Positions 34,543 through 48,203 of a stretch of 64,000 nucleotides of DNA are shown piece by piece; positions within the stretch are counted from its first letter, which is position 1; every line of letters begins with the position of its first letter. The notes under the pieces are model-generated. The model was not told the DNA's origin, ran no database searches, and saw nothing but the letters and a program-made list of their open reading frames with translations. A program made the translations under genes and the position numbers. The DNA comes from Macrostomum lignano (taxonomy: Eukaryota). The DNA lies in NCBI GenBank assembly GCA_002269645.1, contig NIVC01003357.1, positions 38,586-102,585 on the forward strand, read 5' to 3'.

Positions 34543-34907
34543 ATGCGGCTTCGAATTCTGCTGCTGCTGCTGCTGCTGGCAGCGTCGTCATCTGCTGCAT
34601 CGTCGGGTAGCAACGAAATCTGCGCAGAAGTTCCGCTCCGCCTGCTGCTGGTGGCGCCGCGCAATCCGCGCTACTATGTCAGCCTGCCGGGCCTGCTGCC
34701 GGCCTACAACCTGGCCTGGAACCGGGTGCGCTCCAGGTATCCCGGTCACCCGGTGCTGGCTCACGCGCACACCAGTGTCATCTACGAGGACGCCAAGTGG
34801 TATGATTTCGCTGATGACCATCGGGCTGTCTCCGAGGCGACGGACACGGTGGACCCGTATTACCTCAGCTACCGGATGAGCCAGTACTTCTACAATGTCT
34901 CGGCAGG
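34543..34907 (+). CDS. Module A exon 1: signal peptide plus start of an ANF-receptor (periplasmic-binding-protein fold) ectodomain
   Basis: MRLRILLLLLLLAASSSAASS signal peptide. LLVAP...SLPGLLPAYNLAW..V resembles the natriuretic receptor N-terminus. Donor GG|GTAGGA, phase 2. Confidence 0.8.
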
Positions 34908-35033
34908 GTAGGAATTTATATATAGGGTTTTTTATGAACTAGAAACTCACGGAAAATCTCCAGCTTTCTCCAGGAGCACTGTCGTAATGCCTTCCGGACC
35001 TCTTGACAAATCAGTAAATCTTAAAAACAAAAA

Positions 35034-35352
35034 TTAATCAACAGATCTATTAATTAATCAATCAATCAGTCAATCAATCCATCAGTCAAGCAAACAATCA
35101 ATTAATCAATCAATCAGTCAACCAAAAAATCAATCAATCAATCAATCAAGCAATCAATCAATCAATCAATCAATCAATCAATCAATCAACCAACCAATCA
35201 ATCAATGAATCAGTCAATCAATCAATCAATCAACCATTCAATCAATCAATCAACCAATCAATCAACCAATCAACCATTCAATCAACCAATCAATCAATCA
35301 ACCAATCAATCAACCAATCAATCAATCAATCAATCAATCAGTTAGTCAATCA
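35034..35352. repeat. (TCAA)n microsatellite
   Basis: Direct reading. Confidence 0.95.
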
Positions 35353-36059
35353 AGCAAACATTCCACTGCCGTTTTCGTTAAACTGAGCAGATTTTAAACC
35401 AGTGATAAAAATAAGCGGACTACCAGAACAATGACATTTTCTAAATTCGAATATCTCTTGTGCACGCATGCATGCACTTTCATAAAAATCTCCGGCCGAT
35501 ATTAAACTATGCGCAGTCAGGCAGAAGCCGCGCGCAATCGCTGGATGAAGCTGTGAGGCGATCCCTCTAATTCGGATGAAGAATGAGCGAATGAGAAGGC
35601 ACAGAATCTCCTCATGATTCCCCCGGGGAAAGCTGAGCAGTAGACGGCGGCCCACGCGCCAATTTGGCGCCAATGAATCCTGGGGATTTGCTCGCTATCT
35701 CCGCAATCTTTTCTCCCATTCCTTGCCGGCAAGATTGAGCTTAGCAGGGCGGCGCATTTCTATTGTAAATATCCCTGACGCAAATGGAGATCTGCTGCTC
35801 AAGGCTACGAGGATCCATGGAATGCTGTAACTAATTAAATGAATATGAAAACATAACGTCAGGATAAATGTGGTTGGCTCTAGTTCGTACTAAATTTTTG
35901 AGGTTACAAAAATGTGGTATTGTAAGTAATAGTGGGATCGAATATCTAAGGGGTTTGCGAGCACATGGTGAAAGATGGCGAATTAAAACATTGAAGATTG
36001 AGCATTTCGAAAGCCTTTTATTATAAAACTGTGCGCTGTGAGTAGACATTGATATAATG

Positions 36060-36443
36060 GTGAGTAGATCATGACAAGGTGATGAGTAGGCTATTCTAGA
36101 AAGGGGAGTAGATCATAATAGAATGGTGAGTAGATCATAATAGGATAATGAGTAGACTATTCTAGAATGCTGAGTAGACCATTATAGAATGCTGAGTAGA
36201 TCATAATAAGATAATGAGTAGACTATTCTAGAATGCTGAGTAGACCATTATAGAATGCTGAGTAGACCATTATAGAATGCTGAGTAGACCATTATAGAAT
36301 GCTGAGTAGACCATTATAGAATGCTGAGTAGACCATTATAGAATGCTGAGTAGACCATTATAGAATGCTGAGTAGACCATTATAGAATGCTGAGTAGACC
36401 ATTATAGAATGCTGAGTAGACCATTATAGAATGCTGAGTAGAT
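36060..36443. repeat. 22-bp minisatellite (GCTGAGTAGACCATTATAGAAT)n
   Basis: Period 22, degenerate toward the left. Confidence 0.92.
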
Positions 36444-36869
36444 CCAAAGGATTTCAATGAAAAATAAACAGAAAAGACGCAGTGGTGCAAAATATTGTGG
36501 TAAATTCAAACCAAACGGAGTGTTCAACTGCTTCTCTAACCGTGTTTATTTGCTGCAGACTACAAAGCAACTCCATTGTACGAGCTTGACAATATGCTTC
36601 AAGTTCGCGTGCCCGCTTGCGCACCCACACCACTTTTCGCTTCTCGTAACAACACGCTGTCTATAGTGCTCGAAAATGGAACTGCGTGTTTAGATATCTA
36701 GTCATTTACATAGCAATGATTGCATAGTCATTTGGGCAATAGCATGATAAAGTAGATCCAAAGGCGATTGTGATTAGAGATGACTGCGTGAAAGCAGGTG
36801 CATCACGATCAAAAGCCACTATGGTTGGATGTCACGATGGAGAGATGCCATCATTATTAGATTTCTCCA

Positions 36870-37392
36870 TGATTCGATGTCCCCATGATTAGATGTCCTC
36901 ATGATTAGATGTCCCTGTGATTAGATGTCCTCATGATTAGATGTCCTCATGATTAGATGTCCCCATGATTAAATGTTCATATGATTAGATGCCGTCATGA
37001 TTAGATGCCATAATGAGTACCCATGATTAGATGCACCCATGATTAGATGCGCCCATGACTAGATGTACCCATGATTAGATGTACCCATGATTAGATGTAC
37101 CCATGATTAGATGCACCCATGATTAGATGCACCCATGATTAGATGTCCCCATGATTAGATGCACCCATGATTAGATGCACCCATGATTAGATGCACCCAT
37201 GATTAGATGCACCCATGATTAGATGCACCCATGATTAGATGCACCCATGATTAGATGTACCCTTGATTAGATGCACCCATGATTAGATGTCCCCATGATT
37301 AAATGCACCCATGATTAGATGTACCCATGATTAGATGCACCCATGATTAGATGCACCCATGATTAGATGCACCCATGATTAGATGTCCCCAT
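36870..37392. repeat. 16-bp minisatellite (CCCATGATTAGATGCA)n
   Basis: About 32 units ending about 40 nt before the module A exon 2 acceptor. Confidence 0.95.
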
Positions 37393-37433
37393 GCTCAGAT
37401 GCCAGCACGCATCCCATCGCCCAACCGGCTCAG

Positions 37434-37855
37434 GCGGCAGTGCATCCACGCGATATTCGGGCCCACCATCGACTATTCGGTGACGCAACTGATGCCGTTC
37501 GCCTTCCACACTGGCCGCATCCCGATGCTGACAGTCGGCGCACTTGACGAAGCTTTCGCCGACAAGTCGGAGACAACGCTGGTCAGATTGACGCCGCTGC
37601 AGACGCGCGACATCGTCGACATCATCGGCGTCTTCATGCGGAGCAACGGCTGGCGCCGGGTCACCGTCATCTACCAGCGGCCCCAGCGGCTACCGGCCAG
37701 CGACATTCCGGCCAGCCTGTCCGTCGGCAAGAGCATCGCCGCCTGGTGCACCGGCAGGCAGCTCAAGCTGGACGGCGTTGAATGCGTCTTCGAGCTGGCC
37801 GGGGTGCTGCAGCCCAGCGAGATCCTGCTCAGCCGGGTTGGCGACTCAAAGAGCT
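37434..37855 (+). CDS. Module A exon 2: ANF-receptor ectodomain
   Basis: CTCAG|G acceptor is phase 2 and compatible with exon 1. Motifs AIFGP, IPMLTVGA, FADKS.TTLVR, VFMRSNGWRRVTVIY. Donor AGC T|GTGAGT, phase 1. Confidence 0.85.
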
Positions 37856-46560: not shown

Positions 46561-46663
46561 AACCACTTTGTAGTGAAATATGTCTCTGGAAGAAGCCATG
46601 GCCGGTAATGACCATCAGTTTTACTTACGGATGCAAAAGCTTTAAAAACACTCCCGTTGCCAG

Positions 46664-47092
46664 GCCCGTTCTGCTCATTCAGTCTGGCCGCGGTCGCCCG
46701 CTACAACGGCTACCATCTTTACCAGAAGCCCATCATCTCCTCAGGCGGGGCGGCCAGCGCTTTGGACAGCAAGACCGAGTATTTCAACCTTGTTCGCGTC
46801 GGCGCAATCAGCCAGAACCTGGAGAACATGCTGCTCTCGATATTTCGCTACTACAAATGGCCGCCAAGGCCTGTGCAGAGTCTCCTGCTAGTGCATGTAC
46901 CAGATGAGGTCAACACTCAGCCAGATTACAACACCCAGGAGCTGATGGCAGCCCAGGGCCGGCTAATGTGTAACGCGATTGAAAAGCGATTCAGCCACCA
47001 GAACAACTACATCGTCCGCAAGCTGCCGTACGCGCCAAACAATACGCACTTTCATCGCGAGGTGTTTCGAGTCATGCGAGACGAAGTTCGGA
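46664..47092 (+). CDS. Receptor guanylyl cyclase, exon 2 (ANF-receptor domain)
   Basis: CCAG|GC acceptor. GPFCSFSLAAVAR, PIISSGG, LDSKTEYFNLVRV. Donor CGG A|GTGCGT, phase 1. Confidence 0.9.
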
Positions 47093-47766
47093 GTGCGTTT
47101 CAACACCGAGAATAGAGTTTTACGGCTCGTATTTTTCAGAATTTCAGCGCTTTATCTGTCGCCGACTCAAAGTCCCAGCTCCGCGAGTATCTACCCCCAT
47201 GCCCTTCCATCGTCCATGGCTAATCAGATTTGCCATCTTCTCATTAGTTGGCAACTAATCCTCTCGTCCGCTTTGGATGACAGCTGGAGAGAAGCAAGGG
47301 AGTGAGAGGGAGAGAGAGATGGAAAATGGTCCGAGGATGGGAGGCCTGTCAAGCGAGCAGTGGAAAAAGAGGTGTCGACCCCCCATGGGGTTTGCGGCAT
47401 TCGCAATACGGACCTGCCTGCGTGTGCTCGCTTTCGGGAGATCCGCACATGGCCTGAACTTTTGCGCGCCTTCGAGCGGGAATCGGCCGCCCCCCACCCC
47501 GCCTTGGGCATATGATGGGTTGGGGATGGTGCTTGGCCCCATTCTCCTGCACGCAATCGGTCTTGGGGGTTGACGGAACTATTGCTCCCGTCTGACCTAT
47601 GTATAGTCGTTTCACATGCCGTATTGACTGGGCCCTGCTGGTCTGACCTGCCGACATCACCATGCGTTCATTCATTGTTTGCAGTTGAGCTGATGAGATT
47701 GACTATTGTATTTATATAGTATTTTAGCCAGCATGCCGGCTTGTATAAACTGTATACTGTTACTAG

Positions 47767-47840
47767 GGAGTTGTAGCTTATAGTGGTTAAGAGCGGCGGA
47801 CTCACGACTGAAAGGTTGGGGGTTCGATTCTCTTTGAATT
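47767..47840 (+). other. tRNA-derived pseudogene or SINE head
   Basis: A-box-like TAGCTTATAGTGGTTAAGAGC and B-box GGTTCGATTC with tRNA spacing. Acceptor and anticodon stems do not pair properly. Confidence 0.55.
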
Positions 47841-47871
47841 GGTTTGATGGGGTTCAGCATTAGCTGGGGTA

Positions 47872-48027
47872 CTTACTTACTTACTACTGACGGGGGGCGC
47901 AGGCGCCGCGAATAGGCCGCGAGGCCCCTATCGCAACCCCAAGGTGGGGTAATTGAGGGTGTGTGGCGACCCCCCAGTCCTTGGACAATAGCTGCGGCTG
48001 AGCTGTCGGTTGCACATCTGGCCCAAT
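47872..48027 (-). mobile_element. About 156-bp 5'-truncated LINE 3' end with probable TSD
   Basis: Reverse complement of the 14360-14426 tail (GGGGTTGC.ATAGGGG.CTCG.GGCCTATTCG.GGCGCCTGCGCCCCCCGTCAGTAGTAAGTAAG). TGGGGTA at 47865-47871 and 48028-48034. Confidence 0.85.
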
Positions 48028-48091
48028 TGGGGTAGGTGTAATCAATAATGATTATTATATGCTCTAAAACATTCCTGTTGTTGCACTGCAG

Positions 48092-48203
48092 TTGTGGTGC
48101 TGTGCGCTGACCCAGACACAGTCAGGGACATCATGATCAAGGCCTACGAACACGGCTTCATCAATGGCGAGTACGTCTTCTTCAACATCGATCTGTTTAG
48201 CAG
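48092..48203 (+). CDS. Receptor guanylyl cyclase, exon 3 (IVVLCADPDTVRDIMIKAYEHGFINGEYVFFNIDLFS)
   Basis: CTGCAG acceptor (phase 1), GTAATT donor (phase 2). Classic NPR motif. Absent from the ORF track because it is short. Confidence 0.92.

Follow-up and report, generated by a model that had tools for sequence, protein, structure and literature searches.

The window analysed here is a 64,000-nucleotide stretch from the free-living flatworm Macrostomum lignano, contig NIVC01003357.1 (assembly GCA_002269645.1, positions 38,586 to 102,585), and all positions below are counted from its first letter on the forward strand. It contains a gene for a receptor guanylyl cyclase, whose first two exons (module B) encode a signal peptide and the first part of an ANF-type ligand-binding ectodomain, and, farther upstream, a second pair of exons (module A) that encodes another such front end. 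We suggest, and consider somewhat probable on the sequence, that A and B are alternative 5′ modules on one signaling body.

Results

Starting at 45408, the locus yields a nine-exon model on the forward strand (the B model), with canonical GT/AG sites and 975 codons without a stop. After the two exons of module B comes E3 (48092-48203, 112 nt), which is preceded by ...GCACTGCAG, opens with the letters TT GTG GTG CTG TGC behind a phase-1 acceptor, encodes '(F/I)VVLCADPDTVRDIMIKAYEHGFINGEYVFFNIDLFS' and is the candidate common acceptor for both modules. The remainder of the ANF ectodomain is encoded by E4 (50616-51181). E5 (54681-55167) supplies AVAVLLVLICVLAVLVLLIY followed by RRLRLE, a single transmembrane helix ahead of the kinase-homology domain, together with the juxtamembrane region and the start of that domain, which continues through E6 (55643-55841), E7 (56351-56519) and E8 (57490-57657). 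Its end, a coiled-coil linker and the first ~40 cyclase residues (...VTIYFSDICGFTALSSESTPME) are encoded by E9 (57854-58332). The Pfam matches of the model are ANF_receptor (167 bits), PK_Tyr_Ser-Thr (124 bits) and Pkinase (115 bits), and the domain order is ANF, transmembrane, kinase-homology and cyclase, with only the start of the cyclase in the window. Pfam does not report the class III cyclase catalytic domain, PF00211, for the window model, because only these first ~40 cyclase residues fall inside the window; the E9 cyclase stretch is 66.7% identical to that of the orthologue in the annelid Dimorphilus gyrociliatus, and PF00211 is carried by the Dimorphilus and mollusc orthologues. For the rest of the cyclase, the exons are located downstream of 58332, on the far side of a 16-mer satellite and an antisense non-LTR (long terminal repeat) retroelement, which fill 58.4-64 kb. 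In a protein search, the nearest full-length matches of the B ectodomain were mollusc proteins named 'guanylate cyclase', 'gcy-28-like' or 'ANP receptor 1-like', at ~39% identity. We assign the gene with the B body to the receptor guanylyl cyclases of the NPR1/gcy-28 type.

Module B, on the + strand, consists of B1 (45408-45723), with the ATG, the signal peptide and the start of the N-terminal lobe (N-lobe) up to the phase-1 donor GG/GTGAGT (a slash marks the exon border), and B2 (46664-47092), which runs from a phase-1 acceptor and 'GPFCSFS...' to just before the VVLCA strand and ends in the phase-1 donor CGGA/GTGCGT. Its 248 codons are divided by an internal intron at ...VMLG/PFC, in phase 1, and its signal peptide is read as a hydrophobic N-terminus in the sequence. 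An in-frame TAG stands upstream of the B1 ATG, at 45399-45401, so that A cannot read into the B1 start. The module scores 62.8 bits against Pfam ANF_receptor (PF01094; gathering score, 25.4 bits) and 98 bits against a family hidden Markov model (HMM) that was built solely from non-Macrostomum N-lobes (annelid, mollusc, nematode and unassigned).

Module A lies on the same strand. Its first exon, A1 (34543-34907), opens with the ATG and MRLRILLLLLLLAASSSAASSG, encodes a signal peptide, part of which comes from a (CTG)n run, and then the strands and helices that begin the ANF N-lobe, and ends in the phase-2 donor GG/GTAGGA. A2 (37434-37855) follows the acceptor ...GGCTCAG/G, encodes the ANF core from 'FGPTIDYS...' to just before the VVLCA strand, and ends in the phase-1 donor AGCT/GTGAGT; the internal intron falls at ...NVSAG/RQC, in phase 2. 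Module A alone scores 30.1 bits against Pfam ANF_receptor, above the gathering score, and 47 bits against the family HMM. The latter aligns residues 5-210 of A, from the signal peptide onward, and both A exons are therefore homologous to the ANF N-terminal half.

Together A1 and A2 give 262 codons with zero stops, and the splice sites, the signal peptide and the consensus GTGAGT donor are intact. GC content at third codon positions is 0.82 in A versus 0.76-0.80 in B and the body (0.76 in B1+B2), and intron GC is 0.44. Scored against the codon table of the body, the log-likelihood per codon is 0.306 for A and 0.301 for B1+B2, positive in frame 0 only, and A1 by itself gives 0.303, again in frame 0 only. 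Module A was also examined for the marks of a pseudogene: it has no stops or frameshifts, has kept its splice sites and shows no weakening of codon bias. A protein search with A retrieved M. lignano UniRef entries at 100% identity. In an exhaustive HMMER search of 1.84 billion representative proteins, the closest matches were only copies of A, followed by proteins at 29-31% identity over ~80 amino acids. To judge from its sequence, module A is either very old or fast-evolving. We regard it as maintained coding sequence with a history under coding constraint, because the 262-codon frame and the codon bias persist despite extreme divergence, and a neutral relic would not stay open. Reading through the A2 donor keeps the frame open for more than 300 further codons, but these are solely a translation of CT-rich satellite, which cannot contain stops.

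The two modules are 19% identical over 72 amino acids (E about 0.1-0.3; global Z 1.2). Both A2 and B2 have a cysteine exactly 24 residues after the same β-strand, a spacing that is 9-20 residues in ten other modules. In NPR-A the partner of this position is the cysteine of the VVLCA-equivalent strand, and the E3 cysteine would be the likely partner of the cysteine in A2 or B2. The common 24-residue spacing is suggestive, and fits A and B having evolved against one downstream partner.

Both modules begin with a start codon of their own and end in phase-1 donors that are compatible with the phase-1 acceptor of E3, and both joins are in frame (...GDSKS-F-VVLCADPD for A; ...RDEVR-I-VVLCADPD for B). 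A+E3+E4 is matched by ANF_receptor in one piece (residues 106-437 to profile positions 36-352, 121 bits) and is colinear with the NPR-A ectodomain in phmmer (residues 129-484 to 81-428, E 2e-43); the B ectodomain aligns with it end to end (residues 32-470 to 2-428, E 1e-52). Module A stops in the middle of a domain with an interleaved two-lobe fold. It appears incomplete alone and complete with E3, which we judge to be its sole structurally sensible partner.

A first-pass annotation of this DNA had described much of this arrangement, and its coordinates and sequence statements for A, B and E3 were all confirmed in the sequence: a signal peptide and the first ANF part in each module (by Pfam and by the family HMM), differently placed first introns, a phase-1 donor just before the VVLCA strand in both, and the in-frame join of A2 to E3. 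It had also called the two front ends both highly divergent and unrelated; the former stands, whereas the latter is wrong because A and B are both homologous N-lobes. The unit that it took to be swapped, a whole N-lobe, is actually the first ~240 residues of the interleaved fold.

Between the modules, the interval 37856-45407 is filled with satellite arrays and short repeats, followed by the presumed B promoter and 5′ untranslated region. The arrays comprise a CT-rich 28/56-mer (37885-38745), GGGGAT, (TAGA)147, a 17-mer in 103 copies (41077-42826) and repeats resembling miniature inverted-repeat transposable elements; no credible open reading frame (ORF) was found in the interval. Across the 64 kb, tblastn with a full receptor query found no receptor-like exon besides those of the gene described here, and a six-frame scan with the family HMM matched only A1, A2, B1 and B2. 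The earlier statement that the 7.5-kb gap holds no transmembrane, kinase or cyclase exon for A is thus borne out by tblastn, HMM scan and repeat content alike.

Public gene models at this locus are artefactual and unreliable. Module A is contained in three ab initio models (P0001, P0002 and P0004). The first two have frameshifted stretches and end at A2, and P0002 is named 'NmrA domain-containing', a name that nothing in its sequence backs. P0004 (A0A1I8JKT3; window 34606-51168) fuses A to the middle of B1 by way of cryptic sites, a donor within A2 and an acceptor within B1. It also places A directly ahead of B and has one amino-acid difference in A, and therefore comes from another copy or assembly. 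The fourth model, P0003 (A0A1I8I...; window 40796-51177), translates the 17-mer satellite as a 230-amino-acid N-terminal extension, which is why we call these ab initio models unreliable. A protein search with E3-E4 for isoform pairs from the same species gave short fragments only.

One related flatworm transcript was found, a 1677-nt Logan contig from SRR28338163 (L008, protein P0009), with 82% (E3) and 70% (E4) nucleotide identity to the window. In this transcript a divergent 262-amino-acid N-lobe is spliced to VVLCADPD, with Z scores of 4.5 to A and 7.5 to B. The N-lobe is not clearly A-like, and the transcript therefore does not settle the use of A. After N-lobe, E3 and E4 have been spliced, the contig enters a GTGAGT intron and stops ('KQGE' and a stop codon). 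It may encode a soluble ectodomain or be an unprocessed precursor.

In Dimorphilus gyrociliatus (CAJFCJ010000002.1:462100-486303, locus L001), the orthologous body (P0027) is preceded by two separately annotated ANF-only 'genes', so that the public annotation shows three genes. D1 (L001:4784-5531) has a signal peptide, an ANF_receptor match of 63.5 bits and the phase-1 donor GCAA/GTATGA; D2 (L001:8376-9072) has a signal peptide, a match of 59 bits and the phase-1 donor AGAG/GTTGGG. The exon that follows D2 is 112 nt long (TTGTTGTCCTCTGTGCC...TTTAGCAG, then GT), and its length and both phases equal those of Macrostomum E3. No second body was found between D1 and D2. Both modules look ordinary for the family, and they differ from the Macrostomum pair in being single exons and in being 25% identical to each other, as against ~19% for A and B. 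Since D1 and D2 are single exons, there is no competing acceptor in Dimorphilus, where the modules thus lack one, as in known variable-first-exon genes. The sequence of this locus repeats the Macrostomum layout of two modules, phase-1 donors and a shared exon, and alternative use of the modules there is putative. A tandem receptor guanylyl cyclase paralogue lies 2.6 kb downstream of the first gene (L001 16860-24204). By the standards of this genome, the ~4.7 kb between its N-lobe exon and its VVLCA-type exon is a very long gap, in which a second module of at least 80 amino acids was sought and not found.

The phase-1 intron ahead of V[IV]VLCA is kept in three molluscs (Physella, Pinctada and Plakobranchus) and one nematode (Haemonchus). 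At the loci of Haliotis and Aplysia, searches for a second N-lobe gave at most one module within 10-kb flanks. The bodies of the Mactra and Pinctada models are ~80% alike by eye, whereas their N-lobes are weakly similar (38 bits), and for Physella and Plakobranchus the bodies are again ~80% alike by eye, with N-lobes at 33-40%. Such a mismatch between body and N-lobe would fit a choice of module that differs between annotations. The N-lobe of the Mactra model is odd, and the gene spans 376 kb. Mollusc models that open at 'VIVLCASPD' were considered as alternative starts and rejected; the Haliotis start 'MVLYGVFSVS' is an intron read through. In the Pinctada (P0008, locus L005) and Mactra (P0012) models the juxtamembrane region runs into a P2RX7_C-like (PF20478) cysteine-rich ORF that replaces the kinase exons, with kinase and cyclase assigned to the gene that follows. 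The pattern points to a conserved element in an intron that leads bivalve annotation astray.

Several other features of the window may be recorded. Nearly every intron of the locus contains a long, near-perfect tandem array (35032-59167): AATC in 81 copies, a 22-mer in 18, a 16-mer in 35, the 17-mer in 103 (1.75 kb, 99%), a 19-mer in 63, (CTAT)89, a 14-mer in 31 (100%), a 23-mer in 14, (TAGT)105, (GATA)104 and a 16-mer in 48. One GATA-type tetranucleotide occurs in three introns, in both orientations. The non-LTR retrotransposon lies on the - strand at 59190-64000, antisense in the intron after E9, and its ORFs match RVT_1 (113 bits, 60570-61700) and RNase_H (57 bits, 59599-60771), with an upstream ORF (62385-63110) that has no Pfam hit. 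Far upstream, a 165-codon open exon on the - strand (6301-6795) covers the greater part of a Ras-family small GTPase (Pfam Ras, 108 bits) and is part of an unrelated neighbouring gene. An RNase H fragment lies at 13362-13748. At 17996-22491, on the + strand, stand three large ORFs of 437, 292 and 527 amino acids, the last with DUF4218 (33 bits), a transposase-associated domain; the trio is probably an element derived from a DNA transposon. Degenerate repeats of ~60-90 nt occupy 29100-29700 and 30850-31440, and a trinucleotide repeat of ~1.1 kb at 31653-32763 is open in three frames (poly-Tyr, poly-Leu and poly-Thr).

Discussion

We lean toward reading the locus as one NPR1/gcy-28-type receptor guanylyl cyclase gene with two alternative 5′ modules, because A is maintained, A is incomplete alone, E3 is its only sensible partner and the annelid repeats the layout. 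Since a start codon and a signal peptide are present in both modules, each is presumably driven by a promoter of its own, and each would encode the first ~240 mature residues of an ANF-type ligand-binding ectodomain. A distal promoter would give A1-A2-E3 and onward, through an intron of 10.2 kb, and a proximal promoter would give B1-B2-E3 and onward, with the phase-1 donor of either module joined to the same E3 at 48092. The outcome would be two receptors, probably in different cells, that share the C-terminal half of the ectodomain, the transmembrane helix, the kinase-homology domain and the cyclase, but have very different ligand-facing halves. We infer that A is transcribed, that A2 joins E3 past B2 and that the two forms bind different ligands.

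A number of points weigh against the alternative use of the two modules. Unlike the modules of typical variable-first-exon genes, B has an acceptor of its own: the phase-1 acceptor of B2 is phase-compatible with the A2 donor, A1-A2-B2-E3-E4 likewise reads without a stop, and the acceptor of B2 looks as strong as that of E3. Because module B is made of two exons, a transcript from the A promoter would reach the B2 acceptor first, and exclusive use of A2 with E3 would need promoter-coupled or intron-definition effects, which are invisible in sequence. The intron from A2 to E3 would span 10.2 kb, and the mean intron of the M. lignano genome is ~1.1-1.4 kb. Neither cysteine of the first conserved disulfide is present in module A; this disulfide is also lacking in Dimorphilus D1, which misses one of the two cysteines, and in the Mactra and Haemonchus N-lobes. 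Protein searches with A and with the B ectodomain returned only the four UniProt ab initio models from M. lignano, no transcript-derived protein, and no database protein that joins A to E3. An exact scan of metagenome contigs with the last 22 nt of A2 gave a single chance match, inside a bacterial peptidase gene (Ga0080006_1080509, L009, 2024-2045). Orthology of A and D1 is not demonstrable (Z scores of 6-8 to everything), and the common architecture could therefore be convergent. Furthermore, Physella, Pinctada, Plakobranchus and Haemonchus each have one module only within the 10-kb flanks and introns examined. The comparison of orthologous loci, which the first-pass annotation had proposed as a check, thus came out both ways, with the same layout in Dimorphilus but a single module in the molluscs and the nematode within the examined DNA. 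Its proposal of a swappable front end with alternative promoters is the best fit to the sequence, but it had overlooked the same-phase acceptor of B2, and the missing A-E3 protein counts against it as well.

The explanation that fares best after this one, although we think it unlikely, is that A once formed the 5′ end of a tandem paralogue and was orphaned when the body of that gene was deleted or replaced by satellites. It would then be a recently dead or dying pseudo-module that no longer undergoes productive splicing. Such a history would account for the lack of body exons for A and for a gap filled by satellite arrays of fast turnover, in a genome that is highly duplicated and rich in repeats; tandem receptor cyclase paralogues do exist, as the one downstream of the Dimorphilus gene attests, and the first disulfide has been lost from A. 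However, neither stops nor frameshifts nor decayed splice sites occur in A, and in codon bias it cannot be told apart from B. It has no close paralogue, and so is not a recent copy; any orphaning must therefore have been very recent, after a long functional history. The orphan explanation also leaves aside that the end phase of A fits E3 and that the Macrostomum-specific cysteine spacing is common to A and B, and two independent relics are unlikely to show the same intact arrangement in Macrostomum and Dimorphilus.

Could A and B instead be exons of one long transcript, either A1-A2-B2-E3 and onward or, as in A0A1I8JKT3, with A fused into B1? A2 can be joined to B2 in an open frame, the nearest acceptor downstream of A2 is that of B2, and one existing annotation (P0004) does fuse A with B. 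However, A2 and B2 cover the same positions of the family HMM (91-229 and 99-230), and their joint product would therefore duplicate a half-domain and be unlikely to fold. The fused model needs cryptic splice sites in both exons, a donor in A2 and an acceptor in B1, while B1 has its own ATG and signal peptide behind an in-frame stop, and Dimorphilus D2 has no exon on the acceptor side. We accordingly give this explanation little credence.

It is just as improbable, in our view, that A starts a separate, complete receptor gene whose other exons were lost to assembly collapse or a mis-join in the satellites at 37.9-44.7 kb. Assembly of the M. lignano genome is known to be difficult, and 7.5 kb of near-perfect arrays (99% identity, up to 103 copies) is where long-read assemblies collapse. 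Yet a second, independent model (P0004) puts A immediately before B with no other exons, neither protein search found an A-type protein with its own body, and the compact and well-assembled Dimorphilus genome shows the same adjacency. We find it hardly credible that A is secreted by itself, as a truncated ANF half-domain that serves as a decoy or binding protein and whose transcript is polyadenylated in the following intron: its own ATG and signal peptide, the two models that end at A2 (P0001 and P0002) and the flatworm transcript that ends by intron retention after E4 and would give a soluble ectodomain (L008) would suit this reading, but A stops mid-fold without the partner strand and cysteine that E3 supplies, no stop occurs for more than 300 codons of satellite translation past the donor, and the perfect GTGAGT donor would be left unexplained.

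The logic of alternative promoters and variable first exons is already well known, from UGT1A, protocadherins and gcy-28.c/.d. In UGT1A and the clustered protocadherins, 5′ exons with their own promoters and with donors only join common downstream exons, and the variable part carries the binding specificity, with the shared function residing in the constant part. Their variable exons are whole domains, whereas the proposed Macrostomum swap would cut a single fold of the periplasmic-binding-protein type with interleaved lobes, and Macrostomum has just two modules, each split by an intron. A partial precedent exists in the same receptor family. The gcy-28.c and gcy-28.d cDNAs of Caenorhabditis elegans have different ATGs, a common 3′ primer and end, separate promoters and different expression, with gcy-28.c expressed broadly and gcy-28.d in AIA interneurons (PMC9249223). 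Like the Macrostomum locus, this is one gene with two promoters or starts and a common 3′ end, although the worm isoforms are verified by cDNA and the Macrostomum forms are predicted. The gcy-28.d isoform probably has a distinct N-terminal part of the ectodomain. Mammalian NPR-A/NPR1 (1dp4 and 8tg9, ectodomain; 9bcl, full length) resembles B in its colinear ectodomain and domain order, but differs from A in having the first conserved disulfide and from both A and B in lacking their ~12-residue longer loop before the second-disulfide cysteine. To our knowledge, NPR1 has a single N-terminal exon set. Literature searches on alternative promoters or first exons among membrane guanylyl cyclases turned up no account of such an arrangement. 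Two aspects appear to be new: an exchange that affects the first half of one periplasmic-binding-type fold, and a layout that a flatworm and an annelid have in common.

It would be tempting to go further and see in Macrostomum A/B, Dimorphilus D1/D2 and gcy-28.c/.d one inheritance, an ancient system of variable front ends in protostome receptor guanylyl cyclases of the NPR1/gcy-28 type. Two or more promoter-linked modules, each for the first half of the ligand-binding fold, would join a constant body at a single phase-1 site that has been conserved. The swapped half alone would have diversified under the influence of ligands, which would explain why A is so extremely divergent, and one cyclase would be tuned to different ligands in different cells. 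This idea is tentative, and we think it rather doubtful, if conceivable.

If A and B are indeed alternative front ends, gene models that are often broken or mis-fused at the VVLCA exon, in the flatworm, the annelid and many molluscs and arthropods, would be accounted for, and the recurrence across phyla would give a rule for annotation, namely to seek a second signal-peptide/ANF module upstream of the phase-1 junction. Hardly any invertebrate receptor guanylyl cyclase has a known ligand. M. lignano is tractable to transgenesis, and the two front ends would offer a natural domain swap with which ligand specificity could be traced to one or the other half of the ANF fold. For the worm itself, the receptor repertoire would be doubled without gene duplication.

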